Sequence record: KX397371.1
Strand: one strand, 5' to 3'
DNA length: 64,000 nucleotides
Shown one piece after another: positions 5,787 to 25,070 of the stretch; the stretch's first letter is position 1, and each line of letters starts with the position of its first letter. The position numbers were made by a program, and so were the translations under genes. The notes below the pieces were generated by a model. That model ran no database searches. It saw nothing but the letters and a program-made list of their open reading frames with translations, and was not told the DNA's origin.

Positions 5787-6524
5787 ATGGATATGCGTCC
5801 CGTCAGGTTATACCTGCTGACGGCGCTTCACGATCATTTGATGCGTCTCGGTGAGGCGCGTCATATCGCGAAGACAGCGTATCTGATGATTGCGCGAGAA
5901 ATCGCGCGGTCTGACTTACGTGACCGTCACAAATGGCTGTTAACGGATGTGTGCGAGCGTTTGAAAGCACGCGTCTATTCGGATGAACTTACCCGTGCCC
6001 TTTCCTACGTCTGGGTCTATGATGACATTCGGGACGAATCCTTTCTCGACAACAGCGCACGGGTGGTTAAGTTAATCGAACGGGTGACCAACGATTACTA
6101 CGCAACCACGGGTGGCCTCACAACCGAAGTGAATATCCAAAGCTCCATCTTGGATTCGCTTCGTGAGACTGCCAATCATCTCGATGCGCCCATTCTTTTT
6201 TCTACCGACTATGACCTGTTGCGTTTTCGCATCTGGTTTACTGGGGAAATGGATGACGTCGACATGCACGAGCTGTGGTGTCATGACGTGCACAGCATGG
6301 ATGAATGGACGTCCCTGCTTACGACCTACCCATCGGAGAAATACTTGTGGCGTCAAGATCACGAGCCGCTGCTTCCAGAGAGATTAGATGAAGAAGGTTA
6401 CGACATCGAAGCGTTCTGGAAAAACATCACGATTCTCAGTTTGGACAAGCTCTACGTCGAAGCGAAGGAGCGTCTGTGCTCCGAGGATGAAGACCGATGC
6501 GAACTGTACACAGCTATGCACTGA
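5787..6524 (+). CDS. Hypothetical protein
   Basis: 245-aa ORF starting 2 nt after the previous stop. Confidence 0.65.
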   Translation: MDMRPVRLYLLTALHDHLMRLGEARHIAKTAYLMIAREIARSDLRDRHKWLLTDVCERLKARVYSDELTRALSYVWVYDDIRDESFLDNSARVVKLIERVTNDYYATTGGLTTEVNIQSSILDSLRETANHLDAPILFSTDYDLLRFRIWFTGEMDDVDMHELWCHDVHSMDEWTSLLTTYPSEKYLWRQDHEPLLPERLDEEGYDIEAFWKNITILSLDKLYVEAKERLCSEDEDRCELYTAMH

Positions 6525-6913
6525 TGATGTTCCAAGCGTGGTGGCCAAAGCTCACGGAAGGGATTATTGGCGTGTCGGGGTGGGAATATGTGCTGGTGAC
6601 CTCGTACCTGATAGAGTGTGCGAAGAACGGCCTTATCCTGCCCAGTGAACGTCGTCAGGCGATGCTGATGGAGAAACTTGACTCCATGTATCCCGCGGCG
6701 ATGTTCCAACACCGTAAGCATTTGTTCCATGCTGCGCTTGTTGAGTTAGGTGATGAACGTACTGCGATTATCGTGAAGAAAATACGCGATGAGATGGTTA
6801 ATGTGTCACGCGAACTTAATCTGGTTTGGGTCGGTGTGTCGTACACACCGTTAGATGTTGTTCGTTGTCGTTACCAAGTTAATTTCGCAGCCACAACCCG
6901 AGGTGTTGCATGA
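6524..6913 (+). CDS. Hypothetical protein
   Basis: Start re-placed at ATG 6524, coupled to the upstream TGA; overlaps the next gene (ATGA). Confidence 0.6.
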   Translation: MMFQAWWPKLTEGIIGVSGWEYVLVTSYLIECAKNGLILPSERRQAMLMEKLDSMYPAAMFQHRKHLFHAALVELGDERTAIIVKKIRDEMVNVSRELNLVWVGVSYTPLDVVRCRYQVNFAATTRGVA

Positions 6914-9419: not shown

Positions 9420-9695
9420 ATGCAAATCAAAATGTTTACGCGTGCCTTGTCCGCGAAATTCGAACCTGAAATCTATTTCACCCCGCTGCGTAAGGATAAT
9501 GAAGGCAATCGTGTTGTGGTTGGTCGTATCCTGAAATCAGAAACGCTGGCTGATGGTAAGCGTCAGTTGACCATCGAAATCGACGATCGTAACAAAAACC
9601 GTTTCAAAGACTTGGGCGAAGAAGCCTGGGTTGAGCAACACTTCGAACTGAATAACAAGCGTCGCCTGATGCTGCCTACCAAAAAACGCGCTTAA
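9420..9695 (+). CDS. Small basic hypothetical protein
   Basis: GAGGA RBS before ATG 9420. Confidence 0.6.
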   Translation: MQIKMFTRALSAKFEPEIYFTPLRKDNEGNRVVVGRILKSETLADGKRQLTIEIDDRNKNRFKDLGEEAWVEQHFELNNKRRLMLPTKKRA

Positions 9696-9707
9696 CGGAG
9701 TTACGAC

Positions 9708-11207
9708 ATGGCAGGTCCAGCAAAACAAGTCATGGGTGAGGTGATTCGCCCACGCTTTAACGTCTACACCATTATGGATCATGCGCTTGGTACGTATGTG
9801 AAAGGTGAAGACGGCCTCTACTACCTGAACGGTGGTTTTGCCCACATCATGGGCTTTGCGGGTCGCGGTAACACCTTTAAGTCGACGCTGATGGATTTCT
9901 GCATCTTCCAGATGCTTATCCGTTATCGTGCTGCGTGGGGGTCGAAGTTCGATACCGAAGTCTCAGCAGCACTCGACCGTCTGGAGCAGGGCTATATCTC
10001 TGCACAGAACGCCAACGGTATCCACGATGGGTCTTCTGTACTGAGCCTCATTGAAGAAGAACGTTATAACCTCGTGGGTTCTGACGTCATGCCGGGCGAA
10101 GAGTATTACGCCAACTACATCCGTGATGAAGTGGAAGGCCGCTTTAAAGCGTACATGGGCGGCAAGGGTGTGCGTGAAACGCCGTTCCCTGATCCGGTAC
10201 GCAAACGCAATAAGACCATGAACGACCCATGGTATTACTCCATCGACTCCCTGTCTGAGTGGCACTCGTCTAAAATTGAAGACAAGCACTCTGAAACCAA
10301 AGTCGGTGATTCAGAGCAGAACGCCCTGAACATGCGTGACTCACTGGAGAAATCCAACATGATGTCACGTTGGCCGTCAGCGCTGGCTCGTGGTGGCTTC
10401 TTCTTAGCCTTCGTTGCGCAGCTGGCTGATGACTCCGGTAAAGCAATGTCGCAGGGCGGCAAAGGCGCGAAGCCTGCTAACGCCAAACTGCTGGATGATG
10501 CGGGCGATGATCTGAAATTCGCGGGCATCCCACGTCGTCAAATTTCCTTCCTGACCAACTCCCTGCTGGTTGCGACCAAGTCGGGTGAGCTGAAACATGA
10601 AGGTAGCTACGACGCGAAGACCGGCGTCAACGAAGAGTTGTACCCGACCAAACGTTCGAAGGCGATGAACGCCTCGGTGAACGACCTGAAAGAAATCGTC
10701 TTCACACAGTATCGTGCGAAGGGCGGCCATACCGGTGTGAAATTCCGTATGGTGTTCTCTCAGGAGATGGGTCTGCTGTATCACCTCTCACTGTGGCATT
10801 ACCTCGATAAGGTACTGAAAACCGAATACGGTTACACCAGTGCTGGTTCAGGTGGCGCTATCAAAGAGCTGGCGATTCTGCCGGGTCTCAAGTTCGGCCG
10901 TACGACGATTCGTGACCTCTGCGATGAGAACGTGCGTCTGCGTCGTGCACTGGAAATTACCGCTGCGCTGGCGTACATGCAGAACAACTACCACCGTCTG
11001 GAAATGAAGTATCACATCTCTCCTCAGGAATTGTATGAGAAGATCAACGAAAAGTGGGACTGGGACGAGATTCTGGATAACACCGTTGAGTATTGGATGT
11101 TCAAAGACCAGGAAGTCAAAGGTGGTAAACGCACACTGACAGCAATGAGTCTGCTGGCAATGGCGGTGGATGGTCTGGAACCGAAGTTCTTAACCAAGAA
11201 AAAGTAA
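9708..11207 (+). CDS. uvsX: UvsX/RecA-like recombinase
   Basis: Walker A GFAGRGNTFKST and Walker B-like YSIDSLS; size and position fit the phiKZ-family UvsX-like gene. Confidence 0.75.
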   Translation: MAGPAKQVMGEVIRPRFNVYTIMDHALGTYVKGEDGLYYLNGGFAHIMGFAGRGNTFKSTLMDFCIFQMLIRYRAAWGSKFDTEVSAALDRLEQGYISAQNANGIHDGSSVLSLIEEERYNLVGSDVMPGEEYYANYIRDEVEGRFKAYMGGKGVRETPFPDPVRKRNKTMNDPWYYSIDSLSEWHSSKIEDKHSETKVGDSEQNALNMRDSLEKSNMMSRWPSALARGGFFLAFVAQLADDSGKAMSQGGKGAKPANAKLLDDAGDDLKFAGIPRRQISFLTNSLLVATKSGELKHEGSYDAKTGVNEELYPTKRSKAMNASVNDLKEIVFTQYRAKGGHTGVKFRMVFSQEMGLLYHLSLWHYLDKVLKTEYGYTSAGSGGAIKELAILPGLKFGRTTIRDLCDENVRLRRALEITAALAYMQNNYHRLEMKYHISPQELYEKINEKWDWDEILDNTVEYWMFKDQEVKGGKRTLTAMSLLAMAVDGLEPKFLTKKK

Positions 11208-13973: not shown

Positions 13974-14816
13974 ATGAGTAAGAAAAATAGCAAGTTGAAA
14001 AAGTTGCTGGCAGAAGGCGTCCCAGACGATACCCCCATTGGGATATACCTTCGTACAGCATACTGGAATCTCGTGAAACACGAAATGCGTTTAGCTCCGG
14101 TGGACTGGATGGTGTTGTTGAAAGCGTACGTGGCGGATGAACGCTTCGTGGGTCGTTCAACAGCAGAGCCAAAGGAGCGTGAAAGTCGGCTGATTAACGC
14201 CTTAACCGGTGGCTCGGTAAGGGGTGTCAGTGTGGACTTCACTTGGGTGCGGTTCATTGAAAGTTTGGTGATGTTGCGCATCGAAACGTTAACGTTAACT
14301 GCGAAAGCAACCCGTGGTAAGTTTGGGGCAGCGAAGATCGTGCACGCTTCCTGTAATCCTAAACAAGAACTGCTGCGGATTGTGGACGGGGAAATGGACG
14401 AAGACCTGAAAGGGTCGGCGAGTCAAACGTTAAACGCGTTCTTCAAAGACCGGCAGCGCACAGCGTCGCAGGTCATGGAGCACATCTTACTCAAAGTCTT
14501 ATGGAGCTTCTTTGTTGAATACAACATCGACTCTGAGATGTGGCGCAAACTGTCAACGGCTTATGTTAATAACCCGAAGAACTGTCCGGCGCTGTCTAAC
14601 CGACGCAACGACAAGCGACACAATCTGCAATCGGCTATTCGTTACACGAAGAAGATTTCTTGGAAGAAGTTCCTTGAAGCGCTGAAAGCGATTGATGTTC
14701 GTGAGTTTCGTTGTGCGTTCTTGTGTACCAACGACAAGAACCAGTCCTTCGAGACAGAAATCGTCGTTGACCTAACCCAACTCGTTTTCTGGAGTAACCG
14801 CAATGAGTCTGAATAA
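13974..14816 (+). CDS. Hypothetical protein with internal duplicated domain
   Basis: The two halves share a pattern (W..LLKAYV…RLINAL…FTWVRFIESLVML vs WRKLSTAYV…NLQSAI…ISWKKFLEALKAI). Confidence 0.6.
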   Translation: MSKKNSKLKKLLAEGVPDDTPIGIYLRTAYWNLVKHEMRLAPVDWMVLLKAYVADERFVGRSTAEPKERESRLINALTGGSVRGVSVDFTWVRFIESLVMLRIETLTLTAKATRGKFGAAKIVHASCNPKQELLRIVDGEMDEDLKGSASQTLNAFFKDRQRTASQVMEHILLKVLWSFFVEYNIDSEMWRKLSTAYVNNPKNCPALSNRRNDKRHNLQSAIRYTKKISWKKFLEALKAIDVREFRCAFLCTNDKNQSFETEIVVDLTQLVFWSNRNESE

Positions 14817-16131
14817 ACTGGGCGGGTTTTCTAACTCGCTTGAAAGCAAAGCGAGCGGTGCGATCGACCGGGTCAACAATGTCCAAAACGCGGCGGTGAA
14901 TACTGTCAATAATGTACAGAACGGGGTGAACAACGCCGTTAACACTGTACAGAACACCGTAGACAGTGCAGAGCGGGGGATTCAATCCGCTCAGAACCTC
15001 TACAACGACAGTGTGGAAAAAGCCGGGAAAGCCTACGACAGTCTGACCAGTGGGGCCAGCAGTATCAAGGAGAAACTCGGCAACCTGTTTGGAGGTAGCG
15101 ACTTAGCCACTTCTAACGCGGTCAAGGCACCGGGATCGGCAGCATCGGGGACATCGCCCGGTAGCCGTATCGCAGGCTTTTCAACCGATCCGAAAGAAAC
15201 GCTTCCGAGCATCAACCCATTAAACCGTGAAGTGGCTGAACCGTTCAAGCCTAAGAACGAAGCCGCTAACGGGGTGCTCGATTACCTGAAACCCGGTAAG
15301 GCAGGCAGTCTGCTCTCACAAGGGTTCAGTAAGCTTACCGCGTTACGTGACAGTGCGCTGAGTGCGGTTGGTACCGACTATGCTTCCGTCAAGAAGCGCA
15401 TTGAGTCGACCATGCAAGTCGCCGGTCAGTTAGCCCGTCTGCCGGGTGAGGTGCAGCAAGAGATTAACTCGTACGTCTCTGCGGTCAACCAAACCCGTAA
15501 CGAAATCACCGCGGTAATTGATGGGGCAACCCAAACCTTTAAGTCCTTCAAAGACTTCGATGATTATCTGGCAATCGACAGTTTCATTGAAAGCTTCAAG
15601 GGCAGTAACAGTCTGGCCAATTTTGATATTGGTACAACCTCTGGTCTCATCTACGGCTTATCCAGTAAACTGTCTGAGTACGGTCTGCCGGGGAAAACCG
15701 TGTCCATGGTCGATGCCATTACTGACCCGGTTGCCAAACGCGCCATGTACGGCGAGTTACTGGTGCAAGCGGCAAGTGTCGGGAACATTGACACCGTGGA
15801 GTTCTACCTGACCAAACTCGAACCCGGCCAAGGGTTGGAGCTGGCGAATGATGTTATCCAGAAATTGTTCGGGAGCCTGCAAGTCGACACTGGCGTAGGA
15901 TTGAAATCTTACGGCACCCGCTTGCTGAGCATCTGTAATTCACTCGATCCGAAATGGGACAAGACGAAAGTCGCCCCAGCGCGTACCGAGTTGCTGAATT
16001 ACACGTACTGCAATATCAATGCATTGCAGGCACTGTTAACGACTGACAAACGCAAGTATGTGTGTGCGGCAGGTAGCCGTCGCCTACAACGTGCAGATGT
16101 GTTGGTCAACCAGTTCTTCCCGGCAGCCTGA
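14803..16131 (+). CDS. Probable virion structural protein with N/V/Q-rich N-terminal repeats
   Basis: 442 aa with repeats VNNVQN/VNTVQN; structural role inferred. Confidence 0.55.
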   Translation: MSLNKLGGFSNSLESKASGAIDRVNNVQNAAVNTVNNVQNGVNNAVNTVQNTVDSAERGIQSAQNLYNDSVEKAGKAYDSLTSGASSIKEKLGNLFGGSDLATSNAVKAPGSAASGTSPGSRIAGFSTDPKETLPSINPLNREVAEPFKPKNEAANGVLDYLKPGKAGSLLSQGFSKLTALRDSALSAVGTDYASVKKRIESTMQVAGQLARLPGEVQQEINSYVSAVNQTRNEITAVIDGATQTFKSFKDFDDYLAIDSFIESFKGSNSLANFDIGTTSGLIYGLSSKLSEYGLPGKTVSMVDAITDPVAKRAMYGELLVQAASVGNIDTVEFYLTKLEPGQGLELANDVIQKLFGSLQVDTGVGLKSYGTRLLSICNSLDPKWDKTKVAPARTELLNYTYCNINALQALLTTDKRKYVCAAGSRRLQRADVLVNQFFPAA

Positions 16132-16143
16132 AGGTAAAAGATT

Positions 16144-17178
16144 ATGACAAACGTTGAAATGAGAGAACTGCGTGACCTGATTGCTCTGGTACGCGGTTCG
16201 GACTGGGAACCCGAAGTACGCGATCGCATTGCTGCCCGGTTAATACTGGCTCAACTTCAGGGGCCAAACTGGACACATGCGTTCAACAAATCACTGCCAC
16301 TCGAACAACGGGTGATGGGGTTTGATTCATCAGCAATGGATAGAACGTTAGCGAGCAGACTGGCGACATCGCTGGGCTTGTCGTTGGTCGAGCAAATCGG
16401 CCAGTTCGATCCACGCTGGTTTGATGGGGAACTTTCCTACCTGTCTGCGAACCCCCAGTTCCGTGAGAAGATTGTGCGTCGTTTACGCTCGGTCGGTTAC
16501 CGGAGTCTGGCCACAGACAAGATTCCGTCTACGGACGGACTCAACCATTACAACATTTATTCGCAGTCTCGCAACCCGGTAGGTCAATTGGCAAGTAACT
16601 TTGCCTCCAGCCCTGATGGGTCGTACTTCGACACGCCACATGGCCCGTATCGTACGCTGGAAGGGTATTACCATGTCCTGCGCGTACTGGATTACTTTCT
16701 GTACATTGATGCTGAGGAGAAGATTTCTGATTACCCCCTCTATCAGTTCAATGGCAATCCTATCGAACGTGATCTGTTCATCCTCGAATGCTTCAGCATG
16801 AAGTTTCCTGAGATTGACAGAATGCGGGAGGTTGATGGGGCAGAAGGGATACGGACAGGGCGGGTGTTGAAGAAGGCTGTTTACGGTGGGTCACGTTACC
16901 GTCCGGGTGCATTCTCTGAGCACGTCGAGCGCTGTTTTATGAAGGCGGTCGTGCACAAGTTGCATAAACTTAAACTGGATGGCGTGTGTCTTGGGAATAT
17001 CATGGCGGAGATTCATCAGCAGGGTATTCCGTTTGAGCACTACTACGTGATGAACGGGAAGATTCACATTCCAAACCATGCGGACTGGTTACCCGGTCTG
17101 TATACGCGGATTGTGGAAAACATCGACCCGTATGCCGTGGACTTCGACCCAGAGGACGTCATCAAACAACTGGGGTAA
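16144..17178 (+). CDS. NADAR (YbiA/T4 gp30.3)-like domain protein
   Basis: NIYSQSRNPVGQLASNF…F.TPHGPYRTLEGYYH…DGAEGIRTGR resembles the NADAR SNF/xEG/AxxxGR pattern. Confidence 0.55.
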   Translation: MTNVEMRELRDLIALVRGSDWEPEVRDRIAARLILAQLQGPNWTHAFNKSLPLEQRVMGFDSSAMDRTLASRLATSLGLSLVEQIGQFDPRWFDGELSYLSANPQFREKIVRRLRSVGYRSLATDKIPSTDGLNHYNIYSQSRNPVGQLASNFASSPDGSYFDTPHGPYRTLEGYYHVLRVLDYFLYIDAEEKISDYPLYQFNGNPIERDLFILECFSMKFPEIDRMREVDGAEGIRTGRVLKKAVYGGSRYRPGAFSEHVERCFMKAVVHKLHKLKLDGVCLGNIMAEIHQQGIPFEHYYVMNGKIHIPNHADWLPGLYTRIVENIDPYAVDFDPEDVIKQLG

Positions 17179-17184
17179 ATCGAT

Positions 17185-17844
17185 ATGTCGTTTCTTGACA
17201 CCATTGATGAACTGGAACGGGGTGAAGAAGAAGGTGTCATGAAAGTGGCACGGGAATCTATCTCGACCGAAACTGAGAAAGAGTATTGTCTTTGGGTGAA
17301 GCCCACTGCGGAAGGCTGGGAGTGGCTACGTGAGCAACAGGCGTCGTTGTACATTGACACCCTGATGCCCATTAACCGTGGCAAGCGCCGTGTGCGGTTA
17401 ACCGAAGACCATAAAGCCGTGCTGACCGTGAAGCGTTTTGCTGACGAAGGGTGTATCGAAGAGAACTCCGATATCGGGTTTGATACGGCACTTACCTTCT
17501 ATCAGGACGACTTCGTGTCGCATTTGGTCAAACGCATCCATCTACCCGCGGGTGAGTTAGAAGCCAAAGGCGGTAAGCATTGGGACATTGACGTGTTCTA
17601 CCGTGCCGGTGGTCATCCACAACTGCTGAACGCAGACGACTACGACGCACTGCTCAACACCATGAAGCAGGGCAGCTCGTACGGCGAGTGGGTGAAGGTG
17701 GAATTGGAAGTAGAGCGGTTTGAAATGGAATCGATTCGCGAACATATTCCGTTTGCGGTTGAAGACGTCATTCCGTCACGCCCAACCAAGCCCGAAGACC
17801 AGGAGTTCATTCGCAACTACTGGGACGTGGACACACGTCTGTAA
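17185..17844 (+). CDS. CYTH/triphosphate tunnel metalloenzyme
   Basis: ETEKEY (ExExK), RVRL, LTVK, IEENSDI, KRIH, WDIDVF, KVELEV. Confidence 0.7.
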   Translation: MSFLDTIDELERGEEEGVMKVARESISTETEKEYCLWVKPTAEGWEWLREQQASLYIDTLMPINRGKRRVRLTEDHKAVLTVKRFADEGCIEENSDIGFDTALTFYQDDFVSHLVKRIHLPAGELEAKGGKHWDIDVFYRAGGHPQLLNADDYDALLNTMKQGSSYGEWVKVELEVERFEMESIREHIPFAVEDVIPSRPTKPEDQEFIRNYWDVDTRL

Positions 17845-17850
17845 TAGATG

Positions 17851-17886
17851 ACCGCTCCTTCGGGAGTGGTTTTCTTTTTTCTTTTT
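17851..17886 (+). terminator. Rho-independent terminator
   Basis: ACCGCTCC-TTCG-GGAGTGGT followed by a long T tract. Confidence 0.8.
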
Positions 17887-17903
17887 ACACCATGCTGGCT
17901 AAC

Positions 17904-17910
17904 TATGTAG
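17904..17910 (+). promoter_or_regulatory. TATGTAG promoter candidate
   Basis: Third TATGTAG copy, after the terminator and 21 nt upstream of the thyA operon's first gene. Confidence 0.4.
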
Positions 17911-17931
17911 AAATCCTAAGGAATAACTAAA

Positions 17932-18360
17932 ATGAATACACTGTCTTTCGAAGCGGGTAAAGGGTTAAGCGTTAACGGACATCTGGTACCGGACACCAAC
18001 AACCACCATTTTGAAAAGCTCTACCGTCGTATCGGGGTAGGGCGTAAGGTCAACCTGAAAATCACCAACGAGATTGCCCTCAATGGCAACGTGGCGGCTT
18101 TAGGTCCGATGTATGGCTTCCGTCCAAGCCAAGATGCAGCAGCTGCCCTGATGCAGCACGGTGAGTTTAGCAGCGGTGTGTACGCGTTCCGTTTACTCGG
18201 TTCGCTGCGGCGGGTGTCGAACAAACACGTTGGTCAGGGCATGACACCGACCGTTTTACAGAGCGGTGAGATTATTGTCCTCGTACATTCCAATCACGAA
18301 TATAAGTCGGGTTTGGATTTCATGATTAGCTATTCCGAAGTGGAGAGTGCAGATGTCTGA
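17932..18360 (+). CDS. Hypothetical protein, possibly degenerate trimeric dUTPase fold
   Basis: AAGGA RBS; SGVYAF…SNKHVG..MTPTVLQSGEIIVLVHS loosely tracks dUTPase motifs 2-4 without the catalytic residues. Confidence 0.35.
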   Translation: MNTLSFEAGKGLSVNGHLVPDTNNHHFEKLYRRIGVGRKVNLKITNEIALNGNVAALGPMYGFRPSQDAAAALMQHGEFSSGVYAFRLLGSLRRVSNKHVGQGMTPTVLQSGEIIVLVHSNHEYKSGLDFMISYSEVESADV

Positions 18361-19237
18361 TAGAACTTACCCCGTCTTAAAGAACTTTGAACGTGTCGAT
18401 GCGTGGAACAACGATTCCGACATTTATCGTCACGGTAATGTTCATCAGCAGTCTCTGAAAATGTATCGCCATCTTGGTGAGCTGTGTGAGGGTGTCCAGA
18501 AAATGAAACAGCTGGACGTGGCCTCCGCAATGGGCAAGTTTGTGGTGGCATTGGTCGGCGTGGCGTCCTTTGCAGGGGTTGACGCAGAGGAGCTGGATGA
18601 GCTTTACAGCTACGCGGGCAGAAAAGCTACTCCGTGTACCCCAGCGCAAGCTGCGTGCAATCTGGTGCGTTCTACGACCTCTATGGTTAACGATATCAAC
18701 CAGTGGTTGTCTCCTGCTGGTACTCAGATGGCCAGAGCGATTGCAACGTCCTCTATCTGCGAAGTTTTCTGTTTACTGAAACAGAACGCGTCCCTCAATG
18801 CTATCGTGTTAGACCGCACCATTGAGAACGCCACGAACGTGCTCTGTGCGAAGAAAGGCAAAATGGATGAGTTCGGTTTGTTCCATGCAGAAGAAACCAC
18901 CATTGCCACCTCCAGAACCGGTTTTGTCCATCGCGGTGTGGGCGAGTGGATTAAATTGGCCATCAATCGAGATTTGGAAGGTCGCTTCGCAGAGCTGACC
19001 TCGCAGTTGCAGTTCGAATCGAACAGCGGTGAAGTCAGGCTGCGGGTTGAGGAGTCGATGAACAGCCACCTCGAGTTTACTTTGACCAAACATATCCGCA
19101 TGAAGCCTACTGTTAAACATCTTCTTAATGACCTTACCCCGGCAGTCGTGGTGACGCAAGAAGGTGATCGTCTGGAAGTTACGTCTAACAGCGATCTGCA
19201 AACGTTGTTCACTGAATTGGAAAAGGTAACCGAATAA
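18353..19237 (+). CDS. Degenerate MazG-like protein (paralog of 22386-23219) with extra C-terminal domain
   Basis: W…[21 protein letters not shown]…[12 protein letters not shown]…[15 protein letters not shown] aligns with the intact copy, but the acidic ligands are mostly replaced. Confidence 0.6.
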
Positions 19238-20298
19238 TGAAACAGTATTTGGAATTGATGCACACCGTGTTGAACGAAGGTCACGAGAAAGCTGACCGTA
19301 CCGGCACGGGCACCATCTCTATTTTCGGGCATCAGATGCGTTTTGACCTGCGCAAAGGGTTCCCGCTGGTCACCACCAAAAAGCTGCATCTGCGCTCTAT
19401 CATTCATGAGCTGTTGTGGTTTTTGCAGGGCGACACCAACATCCAGTATCTGAAAGACAACGGCGTAAGTATCTGGAATGAATGGTCGGATGAAAATGGC
19501 GACCTTGGCCCTGTGTACGGACACCAGTGGCGCGAATGGGCAGATGTCAAACTCGTCAGTCACTGGGACGAAGCGTCCAAGAAAGTGTTGTACGATCGTG
19601 GTTATCAGTTCAGCGGGGCTATCAATCGTGATGACCCATCTAAAACGCTGGCGGTGCTTACTAAGCGATTTGACCAAATCCAAACGGTTATTGACCAGTT
19701 GAGAAACGACCCGGACAACCGTCGCATCATTGTCAGTGCATGGAACGTGGGGGATTTGGACGACATGGCGTTAGCGCCGTGCCATTCCTTCTTCCAGTTC
19801 TACTCCCGCCCGATGATGGGCAAAGAGCTGGACGTGTATCTGGCGGAGTACCTTAAAACCGATGCGCGTTTGGCAGCGAAACACGCCGAACAGGTTGCCC
19901 TTTGTGAAGCTGACCCGCAAGGGGATCACGTTAGCTCGCACATGTTCTGCCTGACCAACGATATACCGACGCGTGTACTGTCCTGTCAGCTTTACCAGCG
20001 CAGCGCAGACGTCTTCCTCGGCGTCCCGTTCAACATCGCATCTTACGCGTTGTTGGTTCACATGGTGGCACAACAAGTCAATATGGTGGCGGGTGATTTC
20101 GTCTGGACGGGTGGTGATACCCATCTGTACTCGAACCATCTGGAACAGGCCACGTTGCAGCTCTCCCGTGTGCCGCATGACCTGCCCAAGCTCGTCATCA
20201 AACGTAAGCCCGATTCTATCTTCGACTATAAGTTCGAAGATTTTGAAATCGTCGGTTATGAATCACATCCAGCGATTAAGGCCCCGGTTGCTATTTAA
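19237..20298 (+). CDS. thyA: Thymidylate synthase
   Basis: DRTGTGT, LAPCH (catalytic Cys), [28 protein letters not shown]; two insertions relative to E. coli ThyA. Confidence 0.97.
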
Positions 20299-20307
20299 GG
20301 AGCGTGT

Positions 20308-20808
20308 ATGTCTGACAACATACTGAAGTTTCCCGGTAAGCCTAATCCTAACCCTATCACCGTGACGCCCCATGAACACCGCGCCCATTTCCCCATTCAC
20401 AGCCGTGACGGGAAGGTGGGTTCGTTTACAGTACCGGTGGGTGATATGTATTGGTGGGCGGCGATTTACGAACAAGTGGCTGCGGCCAATCCGTTTTTCG
20501 AGAACGTCTTTTACTTTTACTCCGAACCTTACGGCTGGCAAAATCAATCCTACACGAAACGTAAAACATCGTGCGAATTGACGATTGACCGCCGAACCCT
20601 GATAGAGATATTGAAAGTGGTGTCTTATACGCACATTCTGTCTCTTGACGGTTACCTGAACGATGACGATTACGAGATAGTCCATGACAATGCCCTGATG
20701 GTGTTGGCTGACGATTTGGAAATCGATTATGCGATGGGGATCTTCATGTCCCCGACAACGAACCCTGACCGGTTCATCATTAATTTCGTGGAATGCCATA
20801 ATGACTGA
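20308..20808 (+). CDS. Hypothetical protein
   Basis: AAGGAG RBS, 166 aa. Confidence 0.65.
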   Translation: MSDNILKFPGKPNPNPITVTPHEHRAHFPIHSRDGKVGSFTVPVGDMYWWAAIYEQVAAANPFFENVFYFYSEPYGWQNQSYTKRKTSCELTIDRRTLIEILKVVSYTHILSLDGYLNDDDYEIVHDNALMVLADDLEIDYAMGIFMSPTTNPDRFIINFVECHND

Positions 20809-21676
20809 CAAACTCAATAACCTGTATTTCTTCTCTGACCGTTTCTACACCATGCCGGGTGACAACTACTCCTTCGGTATCGTTGCAGCAAAAGACACGG
20901 CCGAAGCCAAGTTGATGCTGGGCACCGAACTGGTTGATGGTCTGCCGCTGGGCACCACTAACACATCGGGTCAGATTCTGTGTGCGGAAGAAATCCGTCA
21001 CATCGATCCGCGCGCTGACAGTGTCGCCAAGACCGTGACCGCTGAGCTGTGGAAACTGAACGACGGTGTGGATGTTTCAGAGCGCGTGAAGTATCTGCGT
21101 GAAACCATTTCGAAAATGCAGGGTATTGACTGTAGCGCACTGGAAGTGGACTTCACCCGCTGTCTGCGTATTCCTGGCGGCTGCACCAGCACCGGCAGTG
21201 ACCTGTGGCGCATCATGGTGAAGCACCCAGACTTCCCACAAACTGTACCGATCATGCTGTCCGCACACGGCGACGGTTCAATCACCGGTAACGATGATGT
21301 GAACTTCACCAAACTCGGTGAAACCGAAGAGTACACCTACCACGAAAACGTGGATCGTGTGCTGACGCCTGAATGGCTCCTGCTGGACTTGTTGGAACAG
21401 CATGGCCTGACCCCAGAAGACTGGTACGTGATTGCCGGTACGGCGCGCGCAGCAGCCTATAGCGCTGCCCCGGTAGACGGCTGGGAAGAAGTGAACGAAG
21501 TGTATGGTCAGAATGAAAGTGCGCACGTCATCCGTTTCTGGCTGAACCCAGACTGGCAGAACCTGATTGTGGCGGCTGTGGCGAAAGTGGTTGAGTCCAT
21601 GCCAAAAGAGCCGCTGCCAGAAAACCTCGCCGACGAACTGGCGGGTTCCGAATCTGCGGACGAAGCCGCAGAGTAA
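20801..21676 (+). CDS. Hypothetical acidic protein
   Basis: Start re-placed at ATG 20801 (MTDKLNN…); strong C/T third-position codon bias suggests high expression. Confidence 0.65.
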   Translation: MTDKLNNLYFFSDRFYTMPGDNYSFGIVAAKDTAEAKLMLGTELVDGLPLGTTNTSGQILCAEEIRHIDPRADSVAKTVTAELWKLNDGVDVSERVKYLRETISKMQGIDCSALEVDFTRCLRIPGGCTSTGSDLWRIMVKHPDFPQTVPIMLSAHGDGSITGNDDVNFTKLGETEEYTYHENVDRVLTPEWLLLDLLEQHGLTPEDWYVIAGTARAAAYSAAPVDGWEEVNEVYGQNESAHVIRFWLNPDWQNLIVAAVAKVVESMPKEPLPENLADELAGSESADEAAE

Positions 21677-21698
21677 CTTAACTGAAAAGGTGAATAAA

Positions 21699-22151
21699 GT
21701 GTCTACGACTCTAATCAATTACGATTTAGTAGTGCAAGAACTTTCCAAGGGGTTGGTTGCCCTCGACAGCGAAACGGCGTTGCGTTGCAATATGCTTCCC
21801 CATATCGCGCTCAGTGAGTTCCGCACCATTCGTTATGGTGCCGGACGCCAGAACGGGGTAACCGAACATGCTTCAAAATTAGCTGCGGAGCATAATGGCC
21901 CAGCACTGGTTCTGACGCATGCGGTGTCGTTACGGGACGATTTCATGTTTCGTGTCGAAGGTAACTTTCCGGGTAAGGGCAACATCACTTCGTTATGTGG
22001 GTACTTCCCCGACAATTGGCGAGTTGAGAAGTTCAGTCTCGTTATTGTTGATGAAGCCGGTTTCTTCTTTAAGAAATTTGGCTACGATAAAATCTATCGC
22101 AGTCTGGCAACACAAACGACTGACGATGTTGTGATTCACCTGATTAACTGA
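21699..22151 (+). CDS. Small P-loop/ASCE NTPase-like protein
   Basis: AAGGTG RBS with GTG 21699; AGRQNGVT (RQxGxT Walker A-like) and LVIVDEAG (Walker B). Confidence 0.5.
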   Translation: MSTTLINYDLVVQELSKGLVALDSETALRCNMLPHIALSEFRTIRYGAGRQNGVTEHASKLAAEHNGPALVLTHAVSLRDDFMFRVEGNFPGKGNITSLCGYFPDNWRVEKFSLVIVDEAGFFFKKFGYDKIYRSLATQTTDDVVIHLIN

Positions 22152-22159
22152 GGTTTGTA

Positions 22160-22330
22160 ATGTCCCAAGTAGAAAAAGAGCAGCAAGTCATCACGCAAGC
22201 CGATACCACCACACTGGACGATTTGTTCGGTGGTGATATTCCGGGCGTGGATGAGAATGCGGTGGTTGAAGGCGGTGTCGATGCGGCGGCTGAAGACGAC
22301 AACTGTGCAGGCGGTGCCTGCAAAATTTAA
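22160..22330 (+). CDS. 56-aa acidic peptide ending in an NrdA-like redox tail (DDNCAGGACKI)
   Basis: Below the ORF-track cutoff. GAGGT RBS; manual translation MSQVEKEQQVITQADTTTLDDLFGGDIPGVDENAVVEGGVDAAAEDDNCAGGACKI*; followed directly by a terminator. Confidence 0.75.
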   Translation: MSQVEKEQQVITQADTTTLDDLFGGDIPGVDENAVVEGGVDAAAEDDNCAGGACKI

Positions 22331-22337
22331 CAAGAGC

Positions 22338-22370
22338 GGGTGTCCTTATGGACACCCCTATTTCATTTTT
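22338..22370 (+). terminator. Rho-independent terminator
   Basis: GGGTGTCC-TTAT-GGACACCC followed by a T-rich tract. Confidence 0.65.
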
Positions 22371-22385
22371 TAAGGACTATCAGAA

Positions 22386-23219
22386 ATGCAACAGACTTTT
22401 GAGTTACCGATTGAACACAAAGCCATCATCCTGAATAGCGCTATCTTAGATTTCGTCATGCCTCAGTTGGCGGCTGCCGGTAAACGGATGTCTCGCATTA
22501 CGCGTCTGGCACTCAGCAGTGAAGGCCCACAGACGCTGGTTAACGGTTTTACCTTTGAAGGTGAACCGGCAGAATTCCACGCGATGTTGCGTTATCACAC
22601 CGCGCTCGACTTCCACAAAGAGCCGGTCTACCATAACCGCATCGTCCCGCTGTACCGTGTGTCACAATGTGTGGCCAAAGTCATTGGCTGGTCAACTGAC
22701 CGCGGTATTCTGGAAAACGGCCGTTGGGACTCACAGGGTACGAAGCTGTATGAAGAAGACGGTGAAGCCGCAACTGGCGTGGGTAAAAACAAAAAGCGTC
22801 TGATCATCGACGGTATCGGTGATGCGCTGGTTGTACTCGTTAACGTACTGGAACTGACCAGTATTGATGCCGCAGAAATTGCGCACATTTATCAGCTGGT
22901 ACGTGACACCAAAACCGTGGTGGATAACCCGCACTACCATTTCCACAAAATGCGTAAGAACCTGACCGAAGTGGTCGATGTGGTTTATGAATGTGAAGCC
23001 ATCGATTCACCGAAGAAAGTGGAAATCGGTCGCTTAACGCACGATGAGCGTCAGCAGATGTTGGGTCATGCGCAGCAGGCAATCCATCATGCCAACCAAC
23101 TGGCACGCCATTACGATTACTCGCTGGATGAGTGCTTCTCTCTGGCGTGGGATGAAATCAAAGACCGTAAAGGTTTCCTGAACGCTGACGGTGTGTTCAT
23201 CAAAGAAGCCGACGCTTAA
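22386..23219 (+). CDS. mazG: MazG-like nucleotide pyrophosphohydrolase
   Basis: WSTDRGIL…QGTKLYEEDGE…IIDGIGDALVVL…LDECFSLAWDEIKDRKG…GVFIKE with acidic metal ligands intact. Confidence 0.8.
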   Translation: MQQTFELPIEHKAIILNSAILDFVMPQLAAAGKRMSRITRLALSSEGPQTLVNGFTFEGEPAEFHAMLRYHTALDFHKEPVYHNRIVPLYRVSQCVAKVIGWSTDRGILENGRWDSQGTKLYEEDGEAATGVGKNKKRLIIDGIGDALVVLVNVLELTSIDAAEIAHIYQLVRDTKTVVDNPHYHFHKMRKNLTEVVDVVYECEAIDSPKKVEIGRLTHDERQQMLGHAQQAIHHANQLARHYDYSLDECFSLAWDEIKDRKGFLNADGVFIKEADA

Positions 23220-23251: not shown

Positions 23252-24106
23252 ATGGAATACCAATTATTTCTCATCACGAACGACTTTACCAAATCCTTTG
23301 TGGACGAGTCGTTTCATGCCACGGTAGTTGCGCCGACAGAGGCCGCTGCTCGTTGGATTGTTGCCCAGCAATGTACTGACCTTCCGATGAATGAAGTGCA
23401 GGCTGCGGTAGCTTTTGCAGTGGGTAAGATTGACGCCCCTGCCGAGGGAATAATTTCTTTTGAGTTCGGGAAACGTAATCGCTTCCCACTCGTTAACCTC
23501 GACGCCTACAAGCGCCGTGAAGAGTTCGTTGAAGTTGAGCTACACGGCGGGATACAACCGACGCACGATATTCATCCGCCGGTGCCGGGTGCGGTGGTCA
23601 AATGTTTCGCGAGCAAAGAGCATCCGCGAATCGTGTTGATCCGCAGCACACTCAAAACCAGCACGCCGACCCTCATTGAAGAAGTGGGTGTGACGAACGA
23701 AGCCACATCGGTTCAGCTTTACACTGTTCATTCGCCGTCGGCGTATGCCGAGGTGGCAAAAGGTGAAGTCTTCACCACTGAGTACATCAATCTGTTTGGT
23801 TGTGAAGATGTCCTGCTGTTCCGCACGCTCATCATTCGCAACACCGAGCTGGCGTATCAGGACAAGCGCACGGAAGGGTTATTGCAGGAACTGCAATCAT
23901 TCTTCACCGAAGGGGGCGATCGTAACAGCATGGATGTGGGTATCAGCTACTATCCGGGCCAGAAGTTGACCATTGCTGATCCCGCTAAGGTGGTACTGTG
24001 GGTCATGTCGTTACCGCAGGTCATCACCCTCGACCGGACGATTACGGAAGAGAGCCTCAAGCCGTTTGCAGGCACTAACTGCCACACCCTGAACGCGGGA
24101 GAGTAA
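23252..24106 (+). CDS. Hypothetical protein
   Basis: AGGAG/AGGA RBS, 284 aa. Confidence 0.65.
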   Translation: MEYQLFLITNDFTKSFVDESFHATVVAPTEAAARWIVAQQCTDLPMNEVQAAVAFAVGKIDAPAEGIISFEFGKRNRFPLVNLDAYKRREEFVEVELHGGIQPTHDIHPPVPGAVVKCFASKEHPRIVLIRSTLKTSTPTLIEEVGVTNEATSVQLYTVHSPSAYAEVAKGEVFTTEYINLFGCEDVLLFRTLIIRNTELAYQDKRTEGLLQELQSFFTEGGDRNSMDVGISYYPGQKLTIADPAKVVLWVMSLPQVITLDRTITEESLKPFAGTNCHTLNAGE

Positions 24107-24107
24107 T

Positions 24108-24608
24108 ATGTTTGATGTGGACGTCGTCCCCCAAGGGGACGAGTTCGCAGTACAGATAAACGGCGTCACCATCTGTGTCTGCGACGAACAACGGGCTAAC
24201 TTCTGGCGTTGCTGTACGGGCGCGGATAAAGTCTTCGTCAGCTGTGACGTCGGTGTGTCGTTTGGTGAAGAACCACTGCGGTTGTGTAAGTTCCGTATCA
24301 CTGAAACGGAAATGCGCACGTTCCTCGGACAGGTAGTCTACACCTACGGCCATCTCGACCATGAGAACCGTGTGGGTTGGGTAGAAATTGACCCGACTAT
24401 CATGCGGACGTTACGTCAGGACGCTGAGGAGATTGTTGAGTCACAAAGCATGTGGCTTGATGAGGATGACGTGTACCCGAAAGGGGTACCGTTTATCCTT
24501 ATCCATCCCGAACGCAACAGCCGTACTGGGGAAGCCTTTATTGAGCTGATGTTTATCGAAATGCCGGAGAACGATGATGTCGAAGAAAAAGAACCAGCTG
24601 ACTTTTAA
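24108..24608 (+). CDS. Hypothetical acidic protein
   Basis: GGAG RBS, coupled to the previous gene. Confidence 0.6.
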   Translation: MFDVDVVPQGDEFAVQINGVTICVCDEQRANFWRCCTGADKVFVSCDVGVSFGEEPLRLCKFRITETEMRTFLGQVVYTYGHLDHENRVGWVEIDPTIMRTLRQDAEEIVESQSMWLDEDDVYPKGVPFILIHPERNSRTGEAFIELMFIEMPENDDVEEKEPADF

Positions 24609-25020
24609 TGCTGATAGTCAGACCATCAGCGTAAACGGAAAGAACTGGGGTAACCTCGGATTGGCAGCATGGGTGCTGGAACGTCTGGCGAACCGCTCTA
24701 CCCGTTTCGGGGGTCTCGACTTTGTCATCATCGACGAACCGCTCAAGTACGAACCGTGGCAGAATTTTCATGCCGTCGAAATGTACAGTGCGATTCCGAA
24801 CATGGTAATCTCAAAGGTGCTGGCAGAACAGAACTACCGTGGTGGTTTTACCAACCCGCATTGGGCACTGACCTCGAGTCAGAAGTACGGCATTGAAGTG
24901 CCGCTACTGAACAAAGTCCCACCGGACATTGGTGAAGATGCATTGGTGTTCTTCTTCTCCTACGACCACGCTGAACCAAACAGCGAGTTCCAGTGGACGA
25001 TGCTGCATCAGATGCGTTAA
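24577..25020 (+). CDS. Hypothetical protein
   Basis: GGAG RBS; ends at the bidirectional terminator. Confidence 0.6.
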   Translation: MSKKKNQLTFNADSQTISVNGKNWGNLGLAAWVLERLANRSTRFGGLDFVIIDEPLKYEPWQNFHAVEMYSAIPNMVISKVLAEQNYRGGFTNPHWALTSSQKYGIEVPLLNKVPPDIGEDALVFFFSYDHAEPNSEFQWTMLHQMR

Positions 25021-25070
25021 ATAAAAAGACTACCTACTCCCGAAGGAGTAGGTAGCTTTATTTTTTTTTG
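25021..25070. terminator. Bidirectional terminator
   Basis: A-tract, CTACCTACTCC-CGAA-GGAGTAGGTAG, T-tract; stem identical to that at 8536. Confidence 0.8.

Follow-up and report, generated by a model that had tools for sequence, protein, structure and literature searches.

A nucleotide-related gene block of Erwinia phage vB_EamM_Parshik appears to be a conserved mosaic of three transcription units, with a free-standing NrdA-tail microprotein and a CYTH-fold homologue of a phage head protein

Erwinia phage vB_EamM_Parshik (KX397371, Machinavirus) is a relative of the jumbo phage SPN3US. We analysed 7,076 bases of its genome (positions 16144-23219 of the window, the 64,000-nucleotide stretch of sequence record KX397371.1 whose numbering is used throughout), which matched this phage at 100% and phage Machina at 98.7%. 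GenBank places ten genes in this block, gp238 to gp247, all on the plus strand, and names only ThyA and a "putative MazG" among them. A sequence-only reading of the block, made without database searches, had seen in it one coordinated module for nucleotide control. Our results suggest that the block is instead a conserved mosaic of three transcription units, and not one system. We put the probability at about 0.6 that the three units are conserved and have different jobs: a first unit ending with a NADAR-fold protein probably involved in counter-defence and a CYTH-fold protein that is most likely packaged in the virion, a second unit that would serve thymidylate and deoxynucleotide synthesis and carries the NrdA redox tail as a separate small protein, and a third unit that starts with an active-looking MazG.

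The division into units follows from hairpins in the DNA. An intrinsic terminator with a UUCG loop and a T-run lies on the plus strand directly 3' of gp239 (17850-17871), and an equivalent hairpin is found 3' of SPN3US gp225. A second plus-strand hairpin with a T-rich tail, probably a terminator or attenuator, separates gp246 from gp247 (22338-22357), and its SPN3US homologue (GGGTGTCC..GGACACCC) stands 3' of gp234. A bidirectional terminator (25030-25055), again with an equivalent hairpin in SPN3US, closes the co-directional run against the convergent gp251. The hairpins 3' of gp239, gp246 and gp250 sit at the same three places in SPN3US, although the DNA is barely alignable, and we therefore divide the stretch into three transcription units. 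The first ends with gp238 (16159-17178) and gp239 (17185-17844), the second comprises gp240-gp246, and the third starts with gp247 (22386-23219) and is completed by three plus-strand genes beyond the block, gp248-gp250 (23252-25020), which match only PHROG families of unknown function. The sequence-only reading had started gp238 at 16144 and GenBank starts it at 16159; the coordinates and strand of the other genes agree.

The gene order gp236-gp247 is colinear in phages Huxley, Caitlin, Asesino, SPN3US and SPAsTU, spanning Machinavirus, Seoulvirus and Erskinevirus. The synteny that had been proposed as a check across SPN3US-like and Erwinia jumbo phages is thus present in three genera but shrinks in Derbicusvirus (Phobos and CR5), where only ThyA ... 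gp245/gp246 ... MazG remain together. The NADAR homologue of CR5 is located elsewhere in its genome, and a CYTH homologue is present in phage Derbicus and missing from the ThyA-MazG loci of CR5 and Phobos. In the sister genome Huxley (100% complete) the block occupies 192-200 kb, with DHFR at 60.7 kb and thymidylate kinase (Tmk) at 94.8 kb, so that these pathway partners of ThyA lie more than 95 kb from the block. Profile searches of the Huxley genome found no NrdA, NrdB, thioredoxin (Trx), glutaredoxin (Grx), dUTPase or dCMP deaminase. CYTH, MazG and NADAR proteins have already been mentioned in general terms for jumbo phages (PMC7824862).

The gene gp246 (22160-22330), last in the second unit, encodes an acidic microprotein of 56 residues with the C-terminus EDDNCAGGACKI. 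A profile of 16 family members searched against the whole Protein Data Bank (PDB) gave 14 matches, all of them to the termini of class Ia NrdA proteins (their last 12-15 residues) and among them the NrdA peptide with glutaredoxin (1qfn). The alignment with E. coli NrdA (residues 747-761) runs end to end, with a C-x4-C pair at the extreme terminus, and C49, G52, A53, C54 and K55 are invariant in the family. At this length the protein is too short to hold the catalytic ten-stranded barrel (PF02867), and it therefore appears to be a mimic of the tail of ribonucleotide reductase (RNR) and not an RNR, in line with the NrdA-tail peptide of the sequence-only reading. It shares with the class Ia tail the C-x4-C-K-I terminus behind acidic residues, but members of its family stand alone as proteins of 26-80 residues, without the barrel, in genomes without NrdA. 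The gene has its own ATG-start frame with a GAGG ribosome-binding site; we considered whether it is the last exon or the remnant of an adjacent nrdA, and rejected this since no NrdA-like frame lies nearby.

A tblastn search with gp246 retrieved close relatives only, probably due to the low-complexity filter, and was replaced by a survey of IMG/VR with a DNA pattern for C-x-G-G-A-C-K-I-stop. Of the 80 loci that this pattern retrieved, 28 are true NrdA ends and 47 are free open reading frames (ORFs) with 26-123 residues; a further 3 are non-NrdA ORFs of greater length, and 2 are spurious, very short frames (10 and 15 codons, no ATG). The N-terminal halves of the free ORFs vary, most being acidic with D/E-L/F motifs, and a NrdA-like frame was found beside none of the 47. 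Several larger frames also carry the tail, with 267 residues in loci L042 and L058, 309 in L061, 123 in L084 and L098, and 70 in L088, the last a zinc-ribbon-like protein with two CxxC pairs; no NrdA was found in the searched records of L042, L061, L084 and L088. Since these non-microprotein frames end in C-x-G-G-A-C-K-I, fusions of the tail to other domains exist as well.

The tested viral carriers of the free tail lack NrdA of their own. The barrel domain PF02867 was found in none of 33 records with a free tail (20 with a completeness of 90% or more) and in none of the 3 records with longer non-NrdA tails, giving 0/36 carrier records in all; as a positive control, NrdA was recovered from 9/9 records in which the tail sits on a long NrdA ORF. 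The baseline consisted of 43 viral records that are at least 40 kb long, encode ThyA and lack a free tail; NrdA is present in 16 of them. The difference is significant on raw counts (Fisher P = 2e-5), a value inflated by relatedness that becomes P ~0.04 when the carriers are counted as ~7 independent lineages. A further candidate role, in which the tail ORFs complement a phage NrdA without a tail, was rejected, as there is no NrdA in any tested carrier.

The genomic neighbours of the microprotein recur as well. A P-loop-tail-MazG arrangement is seen in 12 of the 47 free-tail loci. In a group of 60-kb phages the microprotein has a deoxynucleoside monophosphate (dNMP) kinase after it, some +85 to +98 nt away, and the six loci that are long enough show ThyX 1.4-1.8 kb downstream; in two further phage groups ThyA lies 1.3-4.9 kb downstream. 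The tail microprotein thus recurs beside ThyA, ThyX or dNMP kinase in unrelated phages, and a deoxynucleotide role of the gp245-gp246-MazG/ThyA sub-block is therefore plausible. Together with the absence of NrdA, this context is independent evidence for a function of the microprotein in the supply of deoxynucleotides to phages that rely on the host reductase.

Relatives of gp246 with 40-48 residues were also found by word search in the chromosomes of Neisseria and related bacteria, away from nrdAB. In Neisseria arctica and a related metagenome contig (L009 6001-6132; L012 6001-6147), one of them is flanked by a DUF3079 gene and an HxlR regulator, and the other is convergent with a YfbR-like 5'-deoxynucleotidase. 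The NrdA of N. arctica itself ends in DDGCAGGACKI. We found no description of free-standing NrdA-tail proteins in the literature, and the RNR-tail microprotein family therefore seems to be undescribed.

As RNR, thioredoxin and glutaredoxin are all absent from the phage, gp246 most likely joins the electron path between Trx/Grx and class Ia RNR of the host. We envisage that it is reduced by Trx or Grx1, engages NrdA, and thereby would tune the host deoxynucleoside triphosphate (dNTP) synthesis on which the phage depends, be it by stimulation, protection or inhibition. In a purely inhibitory version, gp246 would be a bacterial-virus counterpart of yeast Sml1: it would occupy the entrance of the NrdA active site or soak up reduced Trx/Grx1, and so shut down host dNTP synthesis or Trx-dependent host functions instead of helping them. 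Small disordered RNR regulators are indeed known from eukaryotes, namely the inhibitor Sml1 in yeast and Spd1 in S. pombe, and the NrdA active site and Grx1 both bind the tail naturally, with 1qfn among the matches. Like Sml1 and Spd1, gp246 is small, acidic and probably disordered, and would act at the interface of the R1 tail and the active site; however, there is no sequence relation between them, and Sml1 competes with the tail whereas gp246 copies it. We consider such an inhibitor unlikely, since carriers without an RNR of their own and with genomes of up to 307 kb should need the host RNR, and since the neighbours of the tail are genes for dTMP and dNTP synthesis.

The second unit also holds a thymidylate synthase. 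The product of gp242 (19237-20298) is a ThyA with intact catalytic residues, as had been read from its sequence: it matches Pfam PF00303 at 2e-116 (388 bits) and the NCBIfam equivalog NF002499 at 458 bits against a cut-off of 405 bits, and the motifs LAPCH, DRTGTGT and RSADVFLG are present. Judging by its family, it would make dTMP. Parshik ThyA has 353 residues compared with 264 in E. coli-type models, the ~90 extra residues lying in two insertions (~105-135 and 200-245).

The gene upstream of ThyA, gp241 (18353-19237), encodes a MazG-fold paralogue with an additional C-terminal extension. It matches MazG PHROG families at 1e-12 to 3e-8, and its alignment with the gp247 family (hhalign 95.7%, E 9e-9) identifies it as a distant paralogue. 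None of the aligned acidic ligands is kept in gp241, where they have become R/H/L, S/K or N/V/A; for example, WDEIKDRKG has become TNVLCAKKG, the YEEDGEAATG motif of the gp247 family is also altered, and SAMGKFV stands at another replaced acidic motif. By this homology gp241 shares the MazG fold family, but with these substitutions it is not a plausible hydrolase, in line with the degenerate MazG of the sequence-only reading. A single-protein scan of viral contigs returned a relative of gp241 in Huxley only. The stop codon of gp241 and the start of ThyA share an ATGA (19234-19240), which suggests that the dead MazG is translationally coupled to ThyA, and it probably serves as a non-catalytic partner.

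The second MazG-like protein, gp247, looks active, and here too the earlier assignment holds. It matches three MazG PHROGs (phrog_7855 at 2e-121, phrog_1992 at 1e-36 and phrog_715 at 6e-24) and keeps the EExxE and D...D motifs of phage MazG and other all-alpha NTP pyrophosphohydrolases, with E123, E124, E127, D142, D146, E257 and D260 invariant in seven genera-spanning sequences. It differs from other phage MazG proteins in its long N-terminal extension, its Pfam score below the cut-off and its companion paralogue gp241. Such an enzyme would probably hydrolyse dUTP, dCTP or non-canonical dNTPs, and could feed dUMP to ThyA in a genome without dUTPase and dCMP deaminase.

A small P-loop protein had also been noted in the block, and its best candidate by sequence is gp245 (21699-22151), for which an exhaustive protein search found 23 relatives in all. 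The call stands at the level of the family, where distant relatives carry RQxGKT and hhhhD(D/E)A, but not for Parshik itself: in the Parshik/SPN3US lineage GKT is replaced by G-V/I/L-T, and Parshik gp245 retains the Walker B (VIVDEAG) but has lost the Walker A lysine (GAGRQNGVT), departing from GxxxxGK[ST]. Profile matches of gp245 are confined to weak P-loop hits, to AAA_14, AAA_22, ResIII, CobU and GpA_ATPase in Pfam (E 0.004-0.2) and to UvrB in the PDB (E 0.02), and its matches in the ESM Atlas are unnamed clusters. Matches of the profile to RNase A were rejected as artefacts of tandem-duplicated chains. The position of gp245 is directly upstream of the tail gene in all SPN3US-like phages; in CR5 it lies 3' of the tail gene, directly upstream of MazG.

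The CYTH call made for gp239, at the end of the first unit, is borne out by its predicted structure. An AlphaFold2 model (pLDDT, the model's confidence score, 86.8) gave top Foldseek matches that are almost exclusively triphosphate tunnel (TTM) enzymes, with probability 1.00 and E-values of 8e-5 to 1e-2, at modest TM-scores of 0.36-0.59; the matches include NE1496, B. anthracis GBAA_1210, the vaccinia D1 and mimivirus RNA triphosphatases, VTC, YgiF, AtTTM3 and SaTTM. UniRef names the homologue from phage Wellington "CYTH domain-containing". Like CYTH/TTM enzymes such as NE1496, the CyaB-type cyclases and the poxvirus and mimivirus RNA triphosphatases, gp239 has the eight-stranded tunnel fold, with Glu-x-Glu on strand 1, R-x-R, a Lys, and E-x-E on a late strand. 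Among the corresponding residues, E29, E31, R69, R71, K83, K171 and E173 do not vary and E175 hardly does; they lie on predicted strands and would point inward.

A homologue of gp239 is known from the virion of SPN3US. SPN3US gp225, which is 55% identical to gp239 over all 219 residues, is a low-abundance head protein of unknown function from which the prohead protease removes a 24-residue propeptide at ARE-24, preferring V at P4 and S at P1' (PMC10052503). Parshik gp239 keeps this site as V21-A22-R23-E24|S25, so that its first 24 codons (17185-17256) encode a probable propeptide; V21, A22, E24 and S25 are invariant in five aligned sequences, and in a set of 24 sequences E24 is invariant and A22 nearly so. 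Residues 1-24 form a low-confidence helix before the first tunnel strand of the model. With a head protein as homologue and the cleavage site kept in Parshik, gp239 is thus most likely a packaged virion protein and not a pool enzyme of the replication phase. We propose that it is a triphosphatase-type protein that would go into the head, would be cut after E24 by the prohead protease, and would probably leave the virion together with the virion RNA polymerase. The literature we consulted on the topic makes no mention of a CYTH-family head protein, and PMC10052503 gives gp225 no known function; we found no earlier description that links this published head protein to the CYTH fold.

The other gene of this unit, gp238, encodes a NADAR-fold protein, again as the sequence-only reading had it. 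Its AlphaFold model (pLDDT 90.6, from a 16-sequence alignment) consists of a helical N-terminal domain (residues 1-98) and a NADAR-fold domain (~100-339). When the model was compared with 48,161 chains using VIA-align, the top three matches were all NADAR structures: YbiA (2b3w, Z 9.3), a Phytophthora NADAR with ADP-ribose (8bau, Z 9.0) and a Geobacter NADAR (8bat, Z 6.9), with 140-149 residues aligned; the next match (Z 5.1) falls on the separate helical domain. A dozen NADAR-named proteins of giant viruses and phages in the BFVD viral model library also match gp238. The relationship surfaced only with the exhaustive aligner, as Foldseek gave no matches in the PDB; there was no NCBIfam match, and the family profile found no NADAR chain in the PDB by sequence. 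The NADAR domain also matches BFVD A0A173GE06 of Erwinia phage RAY (E 1e-4), whose name "DprA-like" may be a mis-annotation. The extra domain of 98 residues (16159-16452) is confined to Machinavirus and missing in the homologues of SPN3US, SPAsTU and Asesino.

The catalytic pattern of NADAR proteins consists of a Glu and a Lys seven residues apart and a charged E/D/H in the last strand (PMC11543638, PMC11125620), where His is a mark of phage NADARs of the gp30.3 type (PMC11125620). E168, R175 and H294 are invariant in the gp238 family, as is the segment T-L-E168-G-Y-Y-H-x-L-R175, and H294 precedes strand 296-298 of the model. Judged from sequence and secondary structure, the E168 segment and H294 appear to fit the published pattern except for the Arg at the Lys position, and gp238, a NADAR-fold protein by its model, looks catalytically equipped and not degenerate. 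Compared with AdfN (T4 gp30.3) and YbiA, it keeps the Glu in a T-x-E-x-Y-[YF] helix and the His in the region of the last strand, and its residues 100-339 can be overlaid on YbiA and on two crystal structures of NADAR proteins, but it has no Pfam NADAR match, has an invariant Arg in place of the partner Lys, and is twice the size of gp30.3. The model thus makes gp238 a probable ADP-ribosylglycohydrolase of the phage AdfN/gp30.3 kind, and phage NADARs are counter-defence enzymes against DarTG1 (PMC11825919, PMC11125620). In Parshik, gp238 would most likely strip ADP-ribose from phage nucleic acid in anti-DarT1-type counter-defence. The substrate of NADAR enzymes is ADP-ribosylated nucleic acid, not signalling nucleotides.

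These assignments bear on the idea that the whole 7 kb form one coordinated system, which boosts dNTP supply and neutralises nucleotide-based immunity while its dead enzymes act as sponges, decoys or regulatory subunits. Six of the eight gene calls behind this idea are confirmed and a seventh holds at family level, but the degenerate dUTPase-like call for gp240 (17932-18360) fails: hhalign against a bona fide dUTPase gives 0.4%, no match to gp240 was found in Pfam, NCBIfam, PDB sequence-profile or ESM Atlas searches, and a six-frame search of the Huxley genome found no dUTPase domain (PF00692). The idea does account for the colinearity of gp236-gp247 in three genera, for the side-by-side folds that bind nucleotides or their derivatives (NADAR, CYTH, MazG twice, ThyA), and for the lost catalytic residues of gp241 and of gp245, with its missing Walker A lysine. 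We nevertheless regard a single system as quite unlikely, since conserved terminators split the block, the NADAR gene of CR5 lies elsewhere and the CYTH gene is missing from the ThyA-MazG loci of CR5 and Phobos, the CYTH homologue is a head protein (PMC10052503), and DHFR and Tmk lie outside. What remains of the module is thus the conserved gene order and a plausible deoxynucleotide sub-block within three units. Similarly, the theme of pseudo-enzymes applies to gp241 and perhaps gp245, but not to the NADAR and CYTH proteins, which retain catalytic-type residues. NCBIfam and PADLOC scans gave nothing besides ThyA, with no PADLOC-type or sponge-family matches. Nucleotide-related folds can line up neatly without forming one system.

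The weakest alternative, that a lost phage nrdA left gp246 behind as a functionless remnant in a block of inherited gene order without functional linkage, would explain why the tail has the same form as phage and bacterial NrdA tails and why its carriers lack NrdA, as gene loss predicts, but is very unlikely given that no NrdA-like frame adjoins any of the 47 free ORFs, that these ORFs have their own ATG (and gp246 its ribosome-binding site), that most of their N-terminal halves share acidic D/E-L/F motifs unlike the "KTLYYxNTRDG" segment of NrdA, that both cysteines, the G-A and the K are invariant, and that the family is kept in Machinavirus, Seoulvirus, Erskinevirus and Derbicusvirus, in unrelated phages of 60 kb and 190-307 kb, and in Neisseria chromosomes.

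The remaining genes of the second unit are gp240, which encodes a protein of 142 residues that is conserved in SPN3US-like phages, matches phrog_9744 only and overlaps gp241 by 8 nt (18353-18360); gp243 (20308-20808), which is poorly conserved and matches phrog_9376 only; and gp244 (20801-21676), which matches phrog_10453 only. PDB sequence-profile searches with gp240, gp243 and gp244 were empty. In Seoulvirus and Erskinevirus one more small gene separates the CYTH gene from the gp240 homologue (6191-6553 in the SPN3US locus, L003), and Seoulvirus has another after the gp243 homologue (9472-9723 in the same locus); neither is present in Parshik. Upstream of the block, gp237 (14803-16131) begins with N-x-V-Q-N-type repeats and has weak matches to virion-protein PHROGs. 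In SPN3US, amber alleles of genes 222, 225 and 235 were found in a pool of conditional-lethal candidates (PMC5105663), which hints at the importance of these genes and does not prove that they are essential; gene 222 lies two genes upstream of the NADAR gene.

Several observations weigh against the three-unit reading and the roles assigned within it. Neither gp238 nor gp239 has a Pfam match (E <= 0.1), including to NADAR PF08719 and CYTH PF01928 respectively, and gp247 reaches 15.5 bits with MazG PF03819, under the cut-off of 22 bits; PDB sequence searches with gp247 and a PDB sequence-profile search with gp239 were also empty. In gp238 the usual NADAR Lys position (+7 from E168) is taken by the invariant Arg175. 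The signature ExExK of CYTH/TTM enzymes reads ExExE in the gp239 family (E29-x-E31-x-E33 is invariant, with Glu33 at the Lys position), and gp239 further differs from these enzymes in its protease-removed propeptide of 24 residues and in having a capsid-borne homologue in SPN3US; packaging is shown for SPN3US and extrapolated to Parshik. The exclusivity of free tail and NrdA is inflated by relatedness, as noted above. For gp240, gp243, gp244 and, in part, gp245, thus for four genes out of ten, no role could be assigned.

Most parts of the block are new members of known families. Beyond this, we tentatively propose that the gp246 family, widespread in viruses and also found in some bacteria, represents a new class of RNR modulator through which RNR-less phages would commandeer the class Ia RNR of the host along with its Trx/Grx supply, with the tail in many members placed behind an acidic D/E-L/F motif resembling the NrdB tail, and with gp241 and gp245 as non-catalytic partners in the same unit. 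Separately, gp239 would be the first CYTH/TTM enzyme that a phage capsid delivers along with a virion RNA polymerase. We hold this fuller picture to be possible, though less than probable; we know of no other CYTH/TTM enzyme that is delivered in this way.

Testable fold or family assignments are thus available for six "hypothetical" genes found again in each of the SPN3US-like jumbo phages examined, as NADAR, CYTH, dead MazG, MazG, P-loop relic and RNR tail. The tie between SPN3US gp225 and the CYTH/TTM family suggests a packaged triphosphatase that works next to the RNA polymerase injected by the phage. The RNR-tail microproteins give a way into the old question of how large RNR-less phages secure host deoxynucleotides, and their chromosomal relatives in Neisseria may point to regulation of bacterial class Ia RNR by small proteins.

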